This document shows, one piece after another, positions 472 to 45,160 of a stretch of 64,000 nucleotides of DNA. The position numbers were made by a program, and so were the translations under genes. This DNA comes from Trichoplax adhaerens (lineage: Eukaryota > Animalia > Placozoa). Under the pieces are notes generated by a model, which did no database searches, was not told the origin of the DNA, and saw only the letters and a program-made list of their open reading frames with translations. Each line of letters starts with the position of its first letter. Position 1 is the first letter of the stretch. Location of the stretch: assembly GCF_000150275.1 (NCBI RefSeq), contig NW_002060978.1, positions 62,001 through 126,000 of the forward strand. The letters are read 5' to 3'.

Positions 472-3400
472 ACCATGAACCTCCACAAATGATCGTGCCT
501 GCATCTATTAACGTAACGGTTGGCTCTACGGTTTCTTTTACTGTTACTGCTTCAAGCAATAATGGATATAGCATCAATTTTACGATATCAGGTCTGCTAC
601 CTACTGGAATAACATTCTCTAATGGTAGCAGCAATGGTAGCTTTGTCTGGAATGCTACATCAGCCAGTCCAGTATCCCTAACATTTATCGCTACTGATAG
701 CAGAGGTAGGTCCTCCTCCGTAACACCAATTGTCAATATGTGCAATTGTACGAGCAATGGCCAATGTATGTTTAATGCTGCCGTTGGAGAAGCGTTTGCT
801 GTGGTTCCGTGCAAGTGTTCTGCAGGATATACTGGTCTTCGATGCGAGAACAATATTGATGCATGCCTAGCTAATCCAGATGCATGCTATCCAGGAGTAA
901 AATGTACAGATCAACCCCCTCCAGCTGGAATAAATGGCTTTACTTGCAGTCCATGTCCTGCAGGGCTTACCGGGAATGGAAGTACATGTACAGGTAAGCC
1001 ATGGTTTACAATAATCGTTACCAATTAACGAGATAGTTGTTAGGAATCGTTTTAGTAACGTAGAAATTGTAGCAGGATAGAGTTAGTATAAATGAGAAAG
1101 GGTAATGAGAATGATCTTTATGAGCAAACCTGCTGCTGAAAATACAAGAGTGTTGAGGAACTGTAATTCATTAAACTTAGGAGAATTTTTAGTGATACAG
1201 CTCATAAATGACTTATTGCAGACATTAATGAATGCCTGCGATCTCAGCATAAATGTAATCAAACTTGTGTCAACCTGGTTGGCTCTTATCGTTGTCAATG
1301 TCGATCTGGATATCGCTTAAATGCTGATGGCAAGGGGTGTCAAGGTAATGCTTCGATTCTGCCTTTAATTTGATTAATTTGAAATCGTTTCTCTATTCTA
1401 TCAAGTAAAAAAGACGATAAACAATAGATTTCTGAATTAAAGTTAATTAATTTATGTGTGTAAATCATATCTTAAGATATAAATGAATGCATTGGACTAA
1501 ATAACTGTCAGCAAACATGCATTAATCAGCCAGGTGGTTTTCGGTGTTCTTGCTTCGCCAATTTTATCCTTAATGTTGATGGTCGGACTTGCAGAGGTTA
1601 TATTAGTTTTCTCTCTTTGATAGTTCTTACTCTTAATAGATATTATGTTATATTGCTACATATGGTAGATTTGAAAACTCAATTACTTTTTGCACGTATT
1701 CCAAATAGCAAATAATTCTTGCCCTCAACCGAATGTATGTGGAAATAACCTTTGCCATCTAGAAGGCACTGCTGAAATTTGTACTTGCAAAAAAGGCTAT
1801 CGATTAACTGGTCCTAATACCTGTATAGGTTAGTTTGCTACAACATCAATGCGGTAATGATGAGATTGAAATTTTTCAACTATGAGTTCTATAGGCTAAT
1901 TTTCTTGTCCGGAAATGATACAGATATCAACGAATGTTTGGCTAACAACGGTGGCTGTTCTCAACTGTGTGACAATACCGTCGGAAGTTTTCGTTGCATG
2001 TGTAGAAAAGGGTATTTACTGGATTCTACTGAATTCTGTAGAGGTAAGAACACCTATTTATGATAAATGGTGCATTACCTACGGAAATTGAAAGGAATGT
2101 TAGCCACATTACTTGTAGGATCTTGTTTATCATGACGAATATTAGATTTGTTAACCCGAAAGAAGTACTTCATTCTGATAAATATGCAGTTTTCCAATAT
2201 TATTTCTATGTCACTATATTAATTTCCATCTTATTCTTTCTACTATTAAGATATTGATGAATGCTCTAGAAGTGATGATTTATGCCAGCCAACACAAATT
2301 TGCCGAAATACACCATCAAATTATTACTGTATTTGTCGTCCTGGGCTAGTATTCATGAATGGAAGATGCCAACTACGTAAGATTGTAGAACAAATGCTGA
2401 TGGAGAACATTGATTTATCTACCATTAGTTCCAAACATACAGCTATTTTCAAGTGTAATTACTTAGGATGTGGTTCTTTGGTCTTTTTCTGATTTATAAC
2501 TATCTTTTTGGTTGTTTAGCTCCGTCCAATTATGTTCCACCAACTCAACCTCCACCGAATGCCGATCAGACCCAGAATTCCGTTCAAGCTCTATTTCAGT
2601 ATGGTAGTGCAACACAGGTTGATCATTCGTCCAAATACAACTGGCATCTTCATTCTGTAATCTGATTACATCGATTTTATTGCATATTCTTATCTTATCT
2701 TTTCCTATTTTTTATTTATTTGGGTTATGATTGCAGTGGAATATGAATACCAATAATGCATTTAAAGCAGCTTTAGCTGTGATTGTAACCAATTACTGTG
2801 CCAGTCAAAGTCAGAATTGCATGATCCAGAATCGAAGGTATAGTCTAAATTTTGAAACTCGTAGAGAAGATGTCAATCCGGAACAGAGTTACGAGCAGCA
2901 CTAATAGCACCATGATTTATGCTTAGCGACAGTTATTTTAATTGGAGTTGTTTTTTCGGATTTTCCTGTTATAGCTCCATTTTTACGCAAGGTGACATCC
3001 AAATCCAGCCAGGCTATCCTAAAGCCAATGGGTATATTATACCATTTTGCAGCTACATTTTAAATTCTTTCATGACTCGTAAAATACATCTAACCAATTA
3101 TCACTAATGCTATATGATATTAGCAATAATAACCTCGTCATCTTCTACGTCAACCTACCGCCAAGTGCTCAATCAGTTGGAGCTTCCAAAGTTGTTCCTT
3201 CAACTGTTCTTGTTAATATTGTAAGAAATAATTCGATCCATATGGCAGCTGCGGTTGGTGCTCTACGAGTCACTACTATTTCACAAGTTGCAACATCGCA
3301 ACCTACTATGGCTACAACATTATCTACGGTATCTTCGAGAGATAATTTGATAATTGGCTTAACGTTAGGTATTGGTGGTGGTGTGGTGTTATTATTATTT

Positions 3401-5212
3401 GCATTTGCTGGGTAAGATTCTAATATACTCAAAGCTTCGATATTACTAGGTTTTACGATTTTAGATTATGATTGCTATATGGAGTCAAAGACTTGTAATG
3501 TATTTTTTATTAATTATGTCAAAAGTTTTTACACATACTAGCTCACATAGCCAATTGCAGATTGCTGCATGATCACTATGTATTTACCTGTACTCATAAA
3601 ATATTAGTGAGGAGAGTTATCAAGTGAGATTTCAAGTAAGTCTTCCATTTTTCTCTCCTACTAGTCCCTGTAATCTTGAGCTCACTGTCCATATTTGTTT
3701 ATATGATATTTTATGCGGAGTGCAATTTGATCGCCGACGATTTGCATGTACTGCTGCAAGATTCGCTAGAATAGATGTTATGTGTGACTTTAATGGGGTT
3801 TTAATAGGGTGCCAAGTGAGATTTCAATTCAGTCTCCCATTTTTACTCCTACTAACCCATGTATCGTAGGTTTATTGCCAATATTTGATTTTATGATGTC
3901 TTAAGCGGATTGCCATCGATTTGCTTAGACAGCTTCAAGACTAGCTAAGAATATTTAGAATAGATCAAGGTGGTCTTTACCAGATCTAGCAGTTATAACT
4001 CCTGTTCGCACACACTTTTGCGCTATCATAGATTACCATTACTTCACGATAGTCTTCAATATATTTCATGGGATATTAATGAGATGCCATTCTATATTTT
4101 TATATAATAGCTTTCCATCCTAAAATTTATCAGGTTTTAATGGAAAAGTCTTATCACGAATTGCGCTTGCTCACATGAAATTTATTATGATAAATGATTT
4201 ATTACGCTAAAATGTTCAAGTATAGCTTTAATTAAGTCTAACAACTTTACTCATACTGGCCAACATAATTTTGATCCTGCTTGCTGCATGATAGTAATAA
4301 ACTTTTTGCATATGCTGGTGAATGGTAAAGATATCAAATAAGTTTTTAATAATAGCTGAGTGTTATAAATCTTACTTATGTTAACTCGTACTGTTGGATC
4401 TATATGCATTGATGGAAAATCAATTGATATTAATATCTACTTATCTCATAGATTGGTTTTAATAGTATCATAGAATTCTCACCCATATTATCTGATAACA
4501 TTAGATTTCCTTGCATTGATGTTCAATTAGTAAAGATAGAATGATAGACAGTATAATAAGCGTGGTTTTAGTAGTATCATAAAGCTATTGCTCATACGAC
4601 TTCATAACTTTAGATTTCCTTGTACTGATATCCGATTAGTAAAGATAGAATGATAAATAATATTGGGTATGGTTGTAACAGCATCTTACAGTACTCACCT
4701 TCAGTATACTAGACTGATAACCTTAAATTTTCTTGTACTGTATATCCGATTAGTCATGATATGTTTGATGTTATATCAGATGGTTTTAATAAGCCCACAT
4801 TATCTATACTGCTGCTAGATCGCTATAAATATATATGCAAAAGCTTAATAGATGATTGATTTCATGTCTAGCTTAATCAAGACTTAAAATGGCTTTTTCA
4901 AACCAAATTATAAGATTTGGGATTATGATTACTGTTTATTGTTATAGGTTTACGATGTATCGTTTGGATGGAATTAGTTTATAGTTGTACTGGTCTAGAC
5001 AAGCTGACATTATAATTCCAATTATTATACTGTTACATAGCTGAATCTATTTTGTCATTGCAACGCAATCAAGAGCCTTATTTAAATCTATTTGGTATTA
5101 CGCTTGTAGATATTACTTTAGGAAAGGTAAAAGGCCTGACGCGGCAGAAGGTCGAAAATCCAAGCTGTATTGCGAGAAAGCGAGAGAATTAACCAAACTA
5201 AATGACTTGTAA
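472..5212 (+). CDS. MUC4/SUSD2-like EGF-rich type I membrane protein, copy 1 (5' part lies upstream of window)
   Basis: Spliced exons approx 472-993 (DHEPP..Ig-like, CNC..EGF, EGF), 1222-1344, 1477-1597, 1710-1828, 1924-2043, 2251-2375 (DINEC/DIDEC cbEGFs), 2520-2617, 2737-2838, 2974-3030, 3124-3411 ([24 protein letters not shown]), 5110-5212 (tail [33 protein letters not shown]). Exon-for-exon match to copies 2 and 3. Confidence 0.88.
3620..4800. repeat. Degenerate intronic duplications in last intron of copy 1
   Basis: CAAGTGAGATTTCAA..TCT(T/C)CCATTTTT at about 3621 and 3812 (~190 bp period); GGTTTTA.TAGTATCAT..TTAGATTTCCTTG..ATTAGTAAAGATAGAATGATA units of ~110 bp at about 4454, 4564 and 4670. 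Confidence 0.7.
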
Positions 5213-5390: not shown

Positions 5391-5503
5391 ATCCAATTTC
5401 TTACGGCAGATTCTTGCGTATAGGAATTTTTAATTACTTTGTTTATGATGCAGTCTACGGCTTGAAAATTGGATGCAAGTACTACAGCGGCATTTGGTAG
5501 TCC
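5391..5503 (+). promoter_or_regulatory. Conserved structured element downstream of stop codon (putative 3' UTR RNA element), copy 1
   Basis: Invariant GCAGATTCTTGC and ATGATGCAGTCTACGGCTTGAAA (5445-5467) shared with 14543-14655 and 28507-28618; ATCCAATTTC pairs with GAAAATTGGAT. Confidence 0.7.
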
Positions 5504-6836
5504 GTTAGAATTAGAAGTCTATGATTACAAATTATTTTAAATATTTGAAATGAATTTTTGCTATGTTTATCTCCATGATGCTTGATGATTCAGAATTAGA
5601 CGCTGTAAGGATTATCAAAACTAGGATGATATTGCTTAACTCTAGTTCTTCAAGGTGTATCATGATTGCTATTCCAACCGCATTTATTTAATCATCAGCA
5701 ATCAATTCATCTATGGCAGCCTTGAAATTCATTTTCTAACTGCCCGTACTGTACGTTCATTTACTTGAAATGACTGCATCATTTTACTCTTGCTGTATTC
5801 TACAATAATCGTTAAAGGAATAAAAAGGTGTGATTTAAAATATCAAACTTTATGTGCTTGAAGTAAATAAGTGTCTGTGACTTATTTGCCTAACGAGTAA
5901 AGCAGGAAAAAATTTACTATATAAGCAACAAAGATGCTCAGTACTGTGGCCGTAAAAAGAGAATGATCAGGGTTACTTTACTTTGTCATGCCAATTAGCA
6001 TATAAACTATTTTGATGAACTAATTACACATCAACAACGTCAGTTATTGACAATCAAGTGATCCAATGCCGGTAATCCATAGGATGAAGAAGAGATGGCG
6101 AATACAATTTTAAATGCACAGTAGAAATAGAAGAGTTTCCTTTTTTTCGCTATTTTTTAACTTGCATCGCTCTGGGTTTCAATTAAAGTAAGTCGATCTA
6201 TTTTTATACAATTCGTCGAGCTGATATCATTATTTCCATGATTGTTGAAGAATTTTATTCCATGCAGAGACTAATAGGCGTGTTACGTCAAGAATTCTTC
6301 AGAATAAAGAAGTAAACTATTCCAAATTGAATACAAAAGCAAGCATCAACGAGTATGGTTACCAGAATGGCAACATCGATTGTTTACCAGTTATGTTCCC
6401 AATCTACATAAGAATAGCAGATCATGGTAACTGTTTGAATTGATTAGTTATTCTCTATCCTTTCTATGAATGCAGTAAAACTAAGTCTTTGTTGATTACA
6501 AGAATAGCCTAAGGCAGCAACTTTGGGTTGGGCACGGCATGACTAATGCATTGACGTCGATTCCACACCTAAGCCGCATTTTGTCGGCGGCGATCAAATT
6601 TACTCATCATTGGACGGCCTGTTTTCACTGTTGGGTGGTAACGGCGCCGACATTAACTAAATTTACTTGGTTAAAGCTCCCTGCTAAGGCAAATTAATTC
6701 GTTTGCTTTCCATCCTAATAAGAAGTCCGATCGAAACGATCCGTTGTATTATATTTAGATCCATCTTGATTGCCCATTAGATTTTCTAACCTTCATTTTT
6801 TTAGTGTTTGAACTTGATTAAAAGACAATCTTCACC

Positions 6837-12800: not shown

Positions 12801-14323
12801 TAATTATTGGGTCATTGATGGTAATATATCCTTAATTGATGCACTAGAACCATCAAATTATGTTCAACCAACACCGGCGACTCCAAACAGCAATGAAATT
12901 GCCAATTCTGTGCAAGCAACATTCGAATATTCCAATAGCATACTGGTAGGATAGGATGTTCAATTTGTTTCATTGGAGGGTTCCATTTACTACTTCAAAG
13001 ATTGGATGATTCAATCTTTTATTATGGAGAATAACCTCTTTTAATCCTTGCAATTTGTCACTAATGATGCACTTTGATTTTCTAGTGGGCTAGCAATTAC
13101 CGAGATCAATTTAAAGCAGGATTAGCTATAGTGGTTACTCGCTATTGTCAAAGCCAATACCAGACGTGTTCACTTCAGAATCAAAAGTAAGTAACAAGAG
13201 GCTTGATTTCTGTTCTGGAATTTGTTTTAAAGTCGATATCATGCACTTACGGCAGTTTAATTTTCTGATATAATTAAAATAATGGTAAATCGTATAAGAA
13301 TCCGTTATGAACAACAAATATTGGCCTAATAGTTTAAATTAAGGATAACTGATTAATTTATCCATGTGCTATTTCTCCACGTGATTACTCGATCAATATC
13401 TAAGCACAGTAATAATATTTGATAGAATAGCCAGAGCATGAAGTGACTATAATTTACGATACGGATAAGTTATTGCTATTTCCTGATGGATGTAATGTTA
13501 TATCTATTTTATATAAGCATAAGGACTAACAATGATGCTAATTTATGATAGTGTGGCATTTAATCAAGGCAACGTACATATTCGTCCGGGCTATCCAATG
13601 ATTTTAGGGTAATTTACTTATTTGTTCTGTGCTCTTCAATATAATTTTACCTTGGATATAAACTCAATGATATGCCTTCTTTTATTATGATGGAATAGCA
13701 ACAATAATGTCGTCGAATTCTACGTGAAACTACCTGTTGGTGGTTCAGCAACTGTTCTACCTAGTAATGTCCTGACTAATATTGTCAGTGCTAACCAAAT
13801 GCATCTTTCTGCAGCCGTTAATGCTCTTCGCGTAACTGGTATTCAACAAGTTACTCCAACGCCAAAGCCTACTACAGGGATACCCACTTCTAGACCAACT
13901 ATTGCTTCAACAACTGGATCAGCTAGCAAACCAACTACTAAACCAACTATTAAACCAACGGTTGTTACTGCTCCTAATAGTGATAACTTGATCATTGGCC
14001 TAACATTAGGCATTGGCGGTGGCGTAGTCTTGATCCTTTTTGCATTCTTAGGGTAATTTTATTCATGTTGGTTATGAATTTAGCTTTAAACGAAACTTAA
14101 ACCTACGTTTTAGCTACAAATTCATAGATAGATTGAATAGGATAGAAAAGAAGATATGATATATAAAATAAGGCTAATTTCTCTTTTATATTTTATTTAT
14201 TGTTCTAGGTATTACTTTAAGAGGAGCCGATCACTTGCTCGTCGTGCTAATGAGAAATCTCGAGAATTAACCAGAATATATAGCGAGAAAGCAGAAGAAT
14301 TCACCAAGCTAAATGATCTATAA
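6837..14323 (+). CDS. MUC4/SUSD2-like protein (SP, S/T-rich, NIDO, AMOP, vWD, Ig-like, EGF array, TM), copy 2, complete
   Basis: About 19 exons: 6837-7098 (signal peptide MLKLAVLAIVLG.., S/T-rich), 7502-7626, 8196-8494 and 8604-8872 (NIDO: NGMVTF, AISPFW, QVTWE, FQLQLLTDG), 9047-9453 (AMOP: CPCS..DRRF..CCY), 9583-9937, 10146-10345, 10465-10701 (vWD starting [12 protein letters not shown]; GLLGLWDG..NDF; CGSDPACLFD), 10871-11392, EGF exons 11482-12685, 12848-12946, 13086-13187, 13552-13608, 13699-14052 (PTS stalk, TM), 14209-14323 (tail ..IYSEKAEEFTKLNDL*). Confidence 0.92.
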
Positions 14324-14542: not shown

Positions 14543-14655
14543 ATCCAATTTCCTACAGCAGATTCTTGCTCAAAGTTATTGATAACAACTTTGTTTATGA
14601 TGCAGTCTACGGCTTGAAAATTGGATACAAGTACTGTGTTGGTATGTTGTAGTCC
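14543..14655 (+). promoter_or_regulatory. Conserved structured element, copy 2
   Basis: Same element; inner stem CAAAGTT/AACTTTG; AATAAA at 14701 downstream (another AATAAA at about 14429 upstream). Confidence 0.7.
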
Positions 14656-14839
14656 ACTAGGTTTTTAAGCTCATAAGGCCACTTATTTTCCTATTTAATT
14701 AATAAAGAGTTATTTAATTATTGGCTATGCAGTCATTGTTATAGCAATTTTGATATTTTTGTTACGATTTCTCAGACTAGATTTCTTGTAGCTGTAAAAC
14801 ACATATAAATGGTGTTAATAAAAACATTTAAATTAATTT

Positions 14840-15849: not shown

Positions 15850-17190
15850 ACGATTGAAATAACTTGATCATTTTTGTACTCTTTACAGTATTAGTAATTT
15901 CAGTTTGACTGTAAAATCACTTATCAATTTACTGGCTTGTAATCAATCATAATCAAGTGGATGGTAATGTGATACAAAAACTTGATCGCGAGCCCTTTTA
16001 TACTAATAAGGATCTTTGTATATGACCGTATATCATTTATGAACTTATTAGATTACTATATGTCGAGGTCAGCTGGACACACTAATAATTTAAATATGGC
16101 CATATACATGTAGCTTTTATAAACTTATTGGTCCTTATTCATCATGATCAGCTAGATGGCAATGGATTTTAAAACTCATTTCTTAATTCTTTTACTGCAC
16201 TAATAATTTTGATATGATCCTGTAGGTTTTTTTAAGTCATTTTCTATTACCATTGGTGAATGGTAATGAATTGTAATCGTTTGATCAAATCCTAACTATT
16301 TTACAGTATCGGTACTCTTACTTTCAATATGCTCATATAGTTTTCCTGAACTTATTGGACTATTATCCATTTATGGTGAGGTGAAGTGGATGGTAATTAT
16401 AATGGATTGTGATAACTTGATTATTTTTTGACTCTCTTACAGTACCAATAATTTGGGTATGGCTGATAGAGGACTCGTTGACTTATTGGTCCATTATCTA
16501 TCGTCAGATGGATGGAAATGAATTGTAATCACTCGACTCTATTACAGTACTCATATTTTCAAGATGGTCTTACAGCTTTCATAAACTTATTGGATTACTA
16601 TCCGTCGCGATGAGATGAGTGGTAATCGATTGTATTATCTCGACTATTTCTTGACACTTTACAGTACTAATAATTTGAATATGGCCATAAAACCATTCAT
16701 AAACTTGTTAGACCATTATTTATCATCAGGTGGATAGTAATGAATTTCAATCCCTTTAATTACATCTCGACTCTTTTACAGTACTCATATTTTAAAGATG
16801 GTCTCACAGCATTTATAAACTTATTGGATCATTATCCATTATAATGAACTACCGTAGATGGTAATACATTGTAATAACTTGATCATATTAAAAATTTTTT
16901 TGCAGTATTAATAATTCAAATATGACCATATAGCTTTCATTAACTTATTGGACCATTATCCATCAGATAGATGGTAATCAGTTGTATTCACTCGATCATA
17001 TCTTGGCTCTTTTACGGTACTCATATTTTTAAGATGGTCGTACAGCTGTCATAAACATATTAGATTATTGTCAGTTATGATCAAGTGGATGGTAGTGGAT
17101 TGATCATTTCTTGAATCTTTCATAGTACTAATAATTTGAGTATAGCTATTGCAACATTTATTAACTTATTAGACCATTATCTAACATAAT
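15850..17190. repeat. ~115-120 bp tandem repeat (about 12 units) with alternating A/B monomers
   Basis: Recurrent TTACAGTACT..AAACTTATTGGACCATTATCC..GATGGTAAT; units start near 15884, 16080, 16192, 16300, 16437, 16542, 16659, 16777, 16900, 17012 and 17122. Confidence 0.85.
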
Positions 17191-26900: not shown

Positions 26901-28296
26901 AATTGTGATATAGCTCCTTCGAATTACGTTCCTCCTACACCACCAACACCAAATGCTGCCGAGGTTGCAAATTCAGTAGCAGCAATCTTTGAATACCGAA
27001 CTTCTACTCCGGTAATAATTTTAGAGATTGTCGATGCCCATGCGATAATTAACAACAGAGTACAACACCAATCATCATCTACTCCTGCTTCTCTATGCTA
27101 TGCATCACACAGTATTCAATATCATCGATTTTTTTATGTTGATATTCTTTTCGTTATGGTTTAAATATTAGTGGAATGCAGCTTCCATCGCCAGGTTTAA
27201 AGCAGCTTTAGCAAGGGCTGTTACACGTGTCTGTCAAGAAACCTATCAAGAATGCAAACTAAAAAATCATAGGTATCTTGTAAATCGGATCTTAGCCGCT
27301 AATATTACAGATTTATTTTTGCGTACATATTGTCTAACCAGTAGCTCAAGGATCAACGAAATTATGGCTTAAAATTAATTCATTTATACATTACTGAAAT
27401 TTTAGAGAGAGGATAGGAAAGATTTTTAATGGATTGAGATAATTTTATTACTATTGCAATTACTATAATCAATAGTTGTAGATTGCTCTATGAAACACAT
27501 CGAATTAATTTATTCGTTAAAAATGAACTGTATTATAGAAGCCTGCAATATTATACTATGCAAAAATCAACAAAATTGCTTCTTTTTATGTATTTGTAGA
27601 GTTACTTTCAGTGCAGATAATATTAAAATCCGACCCGGGTATCCTTCAATGTCAAGGTAAAATATTAAGACAAATATCGTCTACTATTTCTATTAGTCGC
27701 GGACTCATTGATACTATTTGCTTATCATTTTAATAACGCTATTATCCTTTGGTAGGAACATAAATACTGTAATTTTCTACGTCAAACTGCCTCCAAATGC
27801 TCAAGCAGTTAATGCGTCAGGTGTTCTTCCAGGTGCTGTCCTGTCTGCTGTTTTCAGAGGTAACAATCTGCATATGGTAAGTGCTATGGGAGCAATCCGT
27901 GCAAACGTCACCGCCATTCCTACGCAAACACCAATAACCAAAGCAGCAACGTCCCAAGCTGCAACTAGTACTCCGACAAGTAATTATAATCAAGGATTAG
28001 CCGTTGGTTTAGCTGTTGGTATTGGCTGTGCTGTAATTTTATTTTTTATTATTTATTACACGTAAGTAATGAACCTAACGAAGACGATGAATCTTTCGTT
28101 CATTAATATAATTATAATTATAACCCAAATAAAATGTAGTCTAATAATAACAGATCTAGTAATAAACTATAATAGAATTAAATACTGTTGTCAATTTAAT
28201 TCTTTTAGGGTTAGATGGTACTCAAAGAAACCTCGAAAATCGAAGATATACAAGGAAACGGACTCAGAGCTGATTAATTTAACCGAACGCCAATAA
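17981..28296 (+). CDS. MUC4/SUSD2-like protein, copy 3, complete
   Basis: Same exon architecture with longer introns: approx 17981-18239 (signal peptide), 19485-19609, 20573-20875, 21042-21310, 21799-22205 (AMOP), 22345-22701 ([12 protein letters not shown]), 23805-24002, 24494-24731, 24924-25446, EGF exons 25529-26734, 26913-27011, 27171-27272, 27600-27656, 27756-28061 ([24 protein letters not shown]), 28210-28296 ([28 protein letters not shown]). Confidence 0.92.
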
Positions 28297-28506: not shown

Positions 28507-28618
28507 ACCCAGTTTCGCATAGCAGATTCTTGCTCAAAGTTGTTAACAACAACTTTGTTAATGATGCAGTCTACGGCTTGAAATTTGGATGCAAGTACTG
28601 AGTAGTATTTGGTAGTCC
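28507..28618 (+). promoter_or_regulatory. Conserved structured element, copy 3
   Basis: Same element; perfect inner stem CAAAGTTGTT/AACAACTTTG. Confidence 0.7.
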
Positions 28619-29956
28619 TGGGATTTAAAGTCAATGACAATGATGTATTAGAAATGGAAATGATATATTTATGTCTGATTTTTACCATTAAGTGAAGTTT
28701 GGAGAAGCTCAGCTAATGCCGAGTAATTCTATAGTTTATAGTGTATTTACTCTAATTTTGACTTTCGATATTACTCTTATTGGACTCAAAATTCAAGTCA
28801 GGATTAATCCTAGCATTGTTTTGCCTCTGTTATTACCATCATTTGGCTGCATTTATGTAATAGATTATTTTAATTTTGTAGTAGATTGGGTGGTTTTGTC
28901 TATCTATCTTCTGACACGATTAATAAATCGACAAGTGTATTTGATGTACTTTTATGCCCAATTGCCTTTTGTAAGGTTATCGCTACTTTCTTGAAGTGCA
29001 TGCATCTAGTATCATTACTTGTGAAGTTGCAGACAAAGCTAGTAGGTGGTTAATAAAACACTGCAGATATGCTGATTATATAATTATTATCTCCTTACAA
29101 AAAGTAGGTTGCTGGTAATGGAAATTTAAAGTATAGAAGATTAGGATTTACCTTTAAATCAAATATTCATGCAGTATTTTCAACTGTTAATATCGTCAAT
29201 AGACTGTTGTTACGAAACTTAAAGCGAGCATCAATGATATAACTAGAAACCAGGCAACAGTATATTCAAATAGATGTCCAGTATATCATTCTGTTGTATC
29301 GGCATAATTTAAGAGACCTCTAGCATGCTCGTATGGTCCCACATGCTTCGTACGCATAAATTTATACATTCGCTATCTCTAAACAAATGAAATGTAAATA
29401 GCGATTTCCCTTTCTCCATACTATAGCTCTGCAAAAGAAATAAATCAATGGTGGAGCGAATCATAGCAATTCAAGTGCCATTAAGAATAACGTAAAGAAC
29501 TCACTCCACCAAATTTTTATATGAAATACGTTATGCAAGTGAGGTGATACACCGGCTAAGAACATAATATTTTGGTGATATTACTTTTTTTGTAGCAAGC
29601 TTAATAAGATCCAACAAATTAGCCACATACACGTATGTCCGATTGTGAAAAGTAGCATGTAGAGTATTAGATCGCTTAGATTAGAGTCATTTATTTAATC
29701 CTCTTACAGATTTGGCCTTCCTTTTTTAATAGAAGGTCCGTATCATATAGTCGATTAGTTATTTTAGGTGATGATGTATTGCATTCTCATCAATGACGAT
29801 ACTTTACATTATATCAAACCATAATTATTAAACCAGGTTATTTACAATAACTTGAATTATCCATTGTTTCCTGTTTTTCAAATAATACTATTTATAGACC
29901 AAGATCTGGAAATCAGGTATCTTATATATATTGCTAATTTATAAGGTACATAATTA

Positions 29957-43768: not shown

Positions 43769-44055
43769 TTTCAAGTCCAATAAGAAGATTGCTAACGCAC
43801 TTGCTGCTCAATGACTTTTAGCTCGCTCTCATGCAGCCAGCCAAGAATGGTAAGTGATACTTTGGATGGCTCGTTGGAGAGGCGGTGTGACACCGCATCA
43901 CATGTCAACCGACACGGGCGATGTCACTGGCTCTACTGACCGTCAAATTGACGTTCAGGTCTACCGTCAATCCAGTAGACTACAGCCTACCGTTAGTAAC
44001 GGCTGCCTTGCTTGAACGAGTTGAACATCTGTAGCGCCACAGAGGATCATTTGCA

Positions 44056-45160
44056 CATTGTCCTACAGTACACTCCATCGCTGGACTGGACACTGGACAG
44101 TGGACACGGTACGGTAGTGGTATACTGTACTGTAGAGTGAAGGACGGACTACCGTCCACACAGTGTACACTGTACAGTACTGTAGCAGACAAGGAAAATC
44201 CAGCATTGTCCTACAGTACATACTGTACTGTACTGTACCAGAAAAGGAAAATCCAGTTTTGTCCTACTGTACAGTACACGACGTCGTTGGACTGGACTCG
44301 ACAGTGGACACGATGCGGTAGTGGTACAGAGTGAAGGACGGACTAGTGTACAGTACTGTACAGTGTACACCACGTCGTTGGACTGGACTAGACACTGGAC
44401 AGTGGACAGTGGACAGTGAGTGGACACGGTACGGTAGTGGTACAGAGTGAAGGACGGACTACTGTGCTGTGCCAGAAAAGGAAAATCCAGCAGTCGATGA
44501 CATGGACTTCCATCTCTAACACGGACTTCTTCGAGTACAGTACAGTACAGTTGTCTATCGAGTCAATTCCAGTGTCACTGAGGCTCATTGTACTGTACAC
44601 TGTACACTGTACAGCATGTCGTCACACTTCTACAGTATGGTACACTATCTGGGCCACGTAGCATATAGTAATCATACATTTACAGCCAGCACACGAGCAC
44701 CAAAAAAATGAGACGATAGCCATAGACTACTACAAAAGCAAAGTAAAATAAAATGGATCTATCATGTAATCGAATTGATCCGCTACATCTTAGCGATATC
44801 CATTTAAAAGCCATGAATAAACAATCAATCAACAACAGGATTGTACTGTATGCAGCACTGCTGTACAGTACAGTGTATTGTACAGTATGTACTGTACACT
44901 ACAGTAGAGACCCTCTAGGAGAGACATGACAATCTACAGTACTGTACTGTACTGTATTGTTAAAATTAGAGGGTCTCTACAGTACTGTACTGTACACTGT
45001 ACAGTACAGTGATGCATCGAGTACTGTAGTGCACACTAGTCAATGACAGTAGCGTACCGTACTGCAAGTATGAAAAGGAGAATGCAACAGTCTCACAGCA
45101 GGACAGTACTACAGTCTACGGTACCGTACCGGACCGGACCGCACCGGACCGTACCGTACT
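44056..45160. repeat. Composite pentamer-based repeat/palindrome block in the AIFM1-TUSC3 divergent intergenic region
   Basis: Three copies of GGACAGTGGACACGGTACGGTAGTGGTACAGAGTGAAGGACGGACTA-like unit, three AAGGAAAATCCAG, abundant (TACTG/CAGTA)n, inverted repeat 44904-44917/44967-44980, (ACCGG/ACCGT)n at about 45120-45160. Confidence 0.85.

Follow-up and report, generated by a model that had tools for sequence, protein, structure and literature searches.

Several described systems resemble the block reported here, a stretch of conserved sequence that follows the stop codon in three mucin-like genes of Trichoplax adhaerens. Stem-loop elements of 3' UTRs (e.g., localisation zipcodes, the Roquin CDE and Smaug SRE-type elements) share its presumed setting on the sense strand between stop codon and poly(A) signal, and the block is likewise common to a set of paralogues and holds a short hairpin amid conserved sequence. 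However, it has no sequence or model similarity to any described element, is much longer and more invariant (with a 42-nt core), and its structure has no covariation support. SECIS elements resemble the block in its presumed 3'-UTR location, and the block contains AUGA, but it has no matching GA partner, no apical AAR geometry and no Rfam SECIS match at E-values up to 10.

The remaining likenesses are to pre-miRNA hairpins and to ultraconserved alternative or poison exons. With the former, the block shares an invariant stretch of ~23 nt on the 3' side of a hairpin-like fold, but it lacks the continuous duplex, the conserved complementary arm and the thermodynamic excess of such precursors. With the latter, it shares nucleotide conservation above that of neighbouring coding sequence, conserved AG motifs and a phase-compatible short open frame. 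It differs from these exons in lying downstream of the normal stop, in having no peptide-level constraint and in its weak acceptor context.

Post-transcriptional control in placozoans is poorly known, and a non-coding block of this kind is a rare handle on it. A literature search for conserved non-coding elements in placozoans gave nothing bearing on this locus, and our results support regarding the block as previously undescribed. Judged from sequence comparison, it is an ancient, non-repetitive element tied to the 3' end of a mucin-like gene family. It appears to have persisted through an old gene triplication as well as the separation of diverged placozoan-like lineages, and it is better conserved than the adjacent protein. 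Its 42-nt core, fixed position and fixed distance to the poly(A) signal make it experimentally tractable, offering a route to its putative binding factor and to the co-regulation of apical surface glycoproteins.

Host genes and the conserved block

The window, i.e., the whole 64,000-nucleotide stretch of DNA analysed, contains three tandem + strand genes, each ending with a transmembrane exon and then a short tail exon. An earlier reading of the letters by a model (the sequence-only reading) had called these genes MUC4-like, and they do carry NIDO, VWD, C8-3_MUC4, He_PIG and EGF_CA domains plus a transmembrane segment. Because of this domain set and the transmembrane exon/short tail exon ending, "MUC4-like" is a fair label. 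Their terminal exons are:

5110–5212, + strand: final coding exon of paralogue 1, encoding the cytoplasmic tail, with the stop codon; equivalents at 14209–14323 (paralogue 2) and 28209–28296 (paralogue 3)
13691–14052, + strand: transmembrane exon of paralogue 2, with a phase-2 donor at its end; equivalents at 3083–~3411 (paralogue 1) and 27712–28061 (paralogue 3)

The last intron is ~1.7 kb long in paralogue 1 (3412–5109) versus ~155 nt in paralogues 2 and 3, and ~145 nt and ~110 nt in homologous genes on two foreign contigs, L004 and L019, respectively. A fourth paralogue, more distantly related than these three, was found 16 kb upstream of the window (G000:C1379:45302-45706, locus L012); it has the same layout of transmembrane and tail exons and a tail that ends in KKLNNF. 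No copy of the element was found within ~1.5 kb downstream of it.

Repetitive sequence was also seen in the window. Between paralogues 2 and 3, at 15860–17190, there are several degenerate copies of a ~200-nt unit, which give peptide matches of 50–75% identity in + frames and were left unscored by Tandem Repeats Finder. Internally repetitive, ORF-like sequence, seen as self-matches on both strands, lies at 43980–44660.

The sequence-only reading had placed a ~110-nt element behind each of the three paralogues. Three + strand copies are indeed found there, starting 179, 220 and 211 nt past the stop codons:

5391–5525, + strand: element copy 1 (5391–5503 in the earlier reading, taken here as the core, with weaker conservation on to ~5525)
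14543–14677, + strand: element copy 2 (14543–14655 in the earlier reading)
28507–28638, + strand: element copy 3 (28507–28618 in the earlier reading), with two deletions, one of 1 nt after the core and one of 2 nt beyond it
5406–5417, + strand: 12-mer of copy 1, invariant in all five copies now known and including an acceptor-like GCAG
5423–5443 (approximate), + strand: variable central hairpin of copy 1, with equivalent positions in copies 2 and 3
5445–5467, + strand: 23-mer of copy 1, also at 14597–14619 and 28561–28583, identical in the three window copies

The three-way alignment runs without gaps over ~95 nt, and the 12-mer and 23-mer are unchanged across the window copies, both as described earlier. 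The extent needed revision: the ~110-nt core stands, but the block is longer than that, reaching ~5525, 14677 and 28638 in the three copies. It is the sole alignable block in the three 3' flanks, the remainder of which cannot be aligned, again in agreement with the sequence-only reading. Its size is ~115–135 non-coding bases, positioned ~200 bases past the stop codon.

All five copies have strictly the same orientation relative to the host gene, at a stop-to-element distance of 158–219 nt. The element sits between tandem paralogues and also follows the last paralogue of the array. Its 23-mer includes a second acceptor-like GCAG and carries one substitution in each foreign copy (L004 and L019). 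The central hairpin is the sole part of the element in which pairs have changed on both sides, and its length differs by 1 nt in L004.

Copies elsewhere and conservation against the neutral background

The association with this gene family held genome-wide. Across 105.6 Mb in 1414 contigs, searches by BLAST, by a covariance model built from the copies and by the 23-mer (up to 3 mismatches, either strand) gave three copies only, each behind one paralogue and on the same strand. Matches to the 13-mer outside the three copies were few and scattered. A transposon fragment or MITE was ruled out, as there are no dispersed copies and all three genomic copies lie behind paralogues.

A protein search with the transmembrane exon picked out a 104-residue ORF, located on an ENA metagenome contig of 1.7 kb (L004). 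This contig has the same transmembrane exon, tail exon and stop, and an element copy at L004:987-1100, ~158–159 nt past the stop. A profile search covering 1.84 billion representative proteins gave three further transmembrane-exon ORFs, one of them on a 6.3-kb Logan contig (L019), where the fifth copy lies at L019:5706-5820, ~194–195 nt past the stop. The host exons on these contigs have low protein identity to the window paralogues (37–76%), so the contigs represent clearly diverged organisms with the same gene architecture. Their source is presumably other placozoans.

In a more distant homologue (L018), the element was not found within ~900 nt, and contig L017 was too short for this check. 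Word-index protein searches with the transmembrane exon and with the transmembrane-exon alignment gave P0001 as the one match. The same kind of search with the big exon gave P0007–P0010, whose contigs carry no element and stop short of the gene's 3' end, and a cluster look-up added no members. Matches to the 21-mer in three JGI metagenomes (L006:3047-3067, L007:4893-4913 and L008:1474-1494) were rejected as chance: they are to one bacterial sequence of 60–63% G+C and not to the element. The bacterial site is a six-codon mini-ORF behind a ribosome-binding-like AGGAGA, and it matches the core 21-mer exactly.

Identity among the five copies is 77–89% over the element and 88–98% over the 42-nt core; for the three window copies, the corresponding ranges are 80–86% and 93–98%. 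The best-conserved host exon, in comparison, has a DNA identity of 64–72% and a dS of 0.9–3.0 between paralogues, so neutral sites between paralogues are saturated. The earlier claim that the proteins have diverged more than the element is borne out by these values and by the protein identities of the foreign exons (53–76%). Because it is better conserved than its host proteins, the element is probably functional, and the sequence data place that function most likely in the mRNA tail.

Recent gene conversion could in principle leave a likeness without function. However, element identity between organisms (0.77–0.89) equals that within the genome (0.80–0.86, i.e., not higher), and host-exon dS is at least 0.9. 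Recent gene conversion is therefore excluded, and this explanation, which we grade together with a minus-strand coding exon (see below), is largely refuted and deserves next to no credence. The pattern of identities instead points to purifying selection on the element that began before the duplications, and it supports a constraint that predates both the paralogue split and the organism split.

Coding potential, folding and known RNA classes

Each strand has one frame that stays open through the block in all three window copies, with pN/pS values of 0.46 (+) and 0.53 (−). The + frame could be entered in phase from the transmembrane exon, whose donor is phase 2; the − frame has a YAG before the block and a stop directly after it. 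In L004, the variable centre lacks 1 nt; this deletion, found identically in two assemblies, shifts both frames. The − frame of L019 contains an in-frame TGA, and because the L019 transmembrane-exon donor ends in TG, splicing to the first acceptor would create a TGA stop there as well. The 1-nt deletion of copy 3 falls after the core. Variable columns are spread 8/5/7 over the three codon positions (hand tally, three-copy alignment), i.e., with no three-base periodicity, and four-fold degenerate sites in the core are invariant while neutral sites are saturated.

These observations rule out coding over the full block. A full-length coding exon on either strand conflicts with the 1-nt indels (L004 and copy 3), the L019 stops and the missing codon periodicity. 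A full-length plus-strand exon starting from the first GCAG conflicts with the L004 frameshift and with the L019 stop, split as TG and A across the junction. A minus-strand terminal exon would explain the open frame in the window copies, its YAG and stop, and its pN/pS of 0.53, but it is broken by the L019 TGA and the L004 frameshift, beyond which the DNA is still conserved; in addition, no second conserved minus-strand block was found near the element. As far as sequence can tell, the block is non-coding over its full length.

A shorter coding segment has to be weighed separately. The transmembrane-exon phase-2 donor might be joined to the GCAG in the 23-mer (or to that in the 12-mer), giving an alternative last exon in which a short tail starting LRLENW replaces the normal tail, with the upstream block and hairpin serving as splicing regulators within the intron. 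Alternative exons are known for high nucleotide-level conservation, flanking intron included. Here, the two acceptor-like GCAG motifs are invariant, each follows a moderately pyrimidine-rich stretch, and a poly(A) signal lies downstream. With the second GCAG as acceptor for this donor, a frame of 10–18 codons stays open in all five copies, as read by hand from the sequences.

Other features of the same segment speak against such an exon. Of the five four-fold degenerate sites that the putative 10 codons contain, four are invariant despite saturated neutral sites, and four of the five variable exonic sites alter the amino acid, so the alternative-tail peptide appears to be without constraint of its own. 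If the first GCAG were used, L004 would be frameshifted and L019 would meet a TGA at once. Pyrimidine content before the candidate acceptors is 0.50–0.65 versus 0.65–0.80 at the real tail-exon acceptors, and the profile search of 1.84 billion representatives, a library that may lack records from this genome, found no protein with such a tail. We consider an alternative last exon unlikely; if it were real, gene models of the family would need correcting.

The sequence-only reading described a long stem with compensatory base changes. The changes it named are present, alongside mismatches missing from its account: in copy 3, the outer helix has C.A and U.U, and the inner helix has U.U and G.A in copy 1 and A.C in copy 2. 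L004 adds a G.G mismatch in the candidate helices. The claim of covariation did not hold statistically: two pairs are changed on both sides versus ~1.0–1.2 in column shuffles, a count equalled by 119–171 of 500 shuffles, although four or five sequences are too few for a real test. RNAalifold gives a positive covariation term, i.e., a penalty (+0.56 to +0.8).

The + strand minimum free energies of the five copies have z-scores of 1.16, −0.49, −2.16, −0.35 and −0.91 (mean ~−0.5), and on neither strand is the folding energy lower than that of shuffled sequence. Since covariation is not significant and folding energy is like that of shuffled sequence, any RNA structure is hypothetical. The G-U changes that had been said to favour folding on the + strand amount to a weak lean (~8 G.U-compatible one-sided changes on the + strand versus 3–4 on the − strand, by hand count), which is not significant.

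When 25 more bases are included, RNAalifold picks another fold, in which the central segment pairs with conserved downstream sequence and not with the upstream arm, so both folds are candidates. The apical hairpin keeps a 6-bp stem in four copies, its loop varies in both sequence and length, and it is the sole freely varying part of the element. On these comparisons, the constraint on the element is mainly on sequence, not on pairing.

Comparison with known RNA classes gave no assignment. No Rfam 15 family reaches its gathering score anywhere in the window; with E-values up to 10, four copies gave scattered chance matches far below threshold, none of which recurs between copies. A box C/D snoRNA was rejected because AUGAUGC is internal rather than 5'-terminal, CUGA occurs only in copy 3, and no Rfam snoRNA model scores above 17 bits, the thresholds being 39 or higher. 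A check by eye for hammerhead, K-turn, SECIS, Pumilio, Musashi and STAR-type motifs found none conserved in all copies.

The earlier reading had also raised the idea of a small-RNA precursor that yields the conserved 23-nt stretch, and this can be widened to any independent small non-coding RNA gene. A compact unit of 115–135 nt with sharp conservation boundaries and a possible hairpin-like fold would be in keeping with that idea. The fit is nonetheless poor: in both consensus folds, the 23-mer lies in 2–4-bp helices and loops rather than in a ~22-bp duplex, and it has no conserved complementary arm. With the 23-mer outside any continuous duplex, the fold is unlike that of a microRNA precursor, and placozoans have been reported to lack microRNAs.

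Further points weigh against a small RNA gene. The genome holds no antisense match to the 23-mer at up to 3 mismatches, i.e., no antisense target, and no second locus. The copies have neither conserved C/D nor conserved H/ACA boxes, no conserved promoter block lies upstream, and there is no Rfam match at E-values up to 10. RNA polymerase III transcription is argued against by T5 runs inside copy 1 and L004, which would stop the enzyme. We regard a small RNA gene or precursor as very unlikely.

Poly(A)-signal spacing and candidate functions

Distances from the element to the nearest AATAAA motifs bear on whether it lies in a 3' UTR. In the window, the relevant motifs are:

5819–5824, + strand: first AATAAA after the stop of paralogue 1, at +428 from the element start and followed by a GU-rich stretch; presumed poly(A) signal
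28922–28927, + strand: first AATAAA after the stop of paralogue 3, at +415 from the element start
14701–14706, + strand: first AATAAA after the element in paralogue 2, at +158 (others at +274 and −114)

On the foreign contigs, the first AATAAA is at 1417–1422 in L004 (+430) and at 6130–6135 in L019 (+424). In four of the five copies, then, the first AATAAA after the stop is +415 to +430 from the element start, and a GU/U-rich stretch comes after it each time. With null distances drawn from the window, clustering of four out of five within 16 nt has a probability of ~4e-5. Copy 2 is the exception: it does not keep the ~425-nt spacing, and one AATAAA precedes its element by 114 nt.

The distance from stop to element is more variable than that from element to AATAAA. 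The ~290 nt between the element and the AATAAA cannot be aligned, and no conserved block, shared open frame or consistent folding signal was found in this interval. The sequence data hint that spacing to the poly(A) signal is itself under constraint. From this spacing, the element would lie inside a sense-strand 3' UTR of ~600–650 nt in most copies. The shared strand, narrow stop distance and conserved AATAAA distance all fit a location in the 3' UTR of the mRNA strand.

The reading that we favour, while holding it tentatively, is that the block acts in cis, through its sequence, as a regulatory element of the sense-strand mRNA 3' UTR in the placozoan NIDO-VWD-EGF transmembrane mucin-like gene family. 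This keeps part of the sequence-only reading, which had proposed an undescribed cis-regulatory RNA: the tie to gene 3' ends, the non-coding nature and the sense-strand position stand, but in the five sequences neither covariation nor unusual thermodynamic stability has statistical support. A short hairpin, unconstrained in sequence and loop length, would sit between two nearly invariant stretches (the 12-mer region and the 42-nt core), and a 9–10-bp helix could close the whole unit. A trans-acting factor, most likely an RNA-binding protein, would recognise the invariant, largely unpaired sequences and thereby place the gene family under shared post-transcriptional control (of stability, translation or localisation). 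Transcription across the element, action at the RNA level, the fold and the factor are all parts of this explanation that we infer.

Some observations count against a 3'-UTR element. The AATAAA upstream of the element in copy 2 is one, the two conserved GCAG motifs that allow an alternative-exon reading are another, and neither an RNA-binding-protein motif nor an Rfam family was recognised in the block.

A function in DNA would fit the sequence conservation equally well. At the gene's 3' end, the block could then be a 3' enhancer, a site for a transcription factor or a boundary, or an element for pausing or termination. That sequence rather than pairing is conserved, that neither strand gives a thermodynamic signal and that the element is located between tandem paralogues are all in keeping with this, and the conserved poly(A)-signal spacing could mean coupling to termination. 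However, enhancers and boundaries do not need the fixed orientation and narrow stop distance seen in five copies, one copy also stands behind the last paralogue of the array, and the one-sided substitutions lean to G.U on the + strand. A DNA-level role is in our judgement improbable, to about the same degree as the alternative last exon.

A more specific form of the 3'-UTR reading is suggested by the change of fold described above. The central GAAAAUUGGAU could pair with AUCCAAUUUC upstream of it or else with the GUCC...UUU segment downstream, and the element might thus be a placozoan-specific RNA switch, held ~300 nt from the poly(A) signal and governing 3'-end processing, translation or localisation across the whole mucin-like family. 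We think this quite unlikely. If true, it would mean that a whole family of mucin-like surface proteins is controlled in this way in an animal lineage reported to lack microRNAs. Both complementarities of the central segment, i.e., that to the upstream sequence and that to the downstream one, are conserved.
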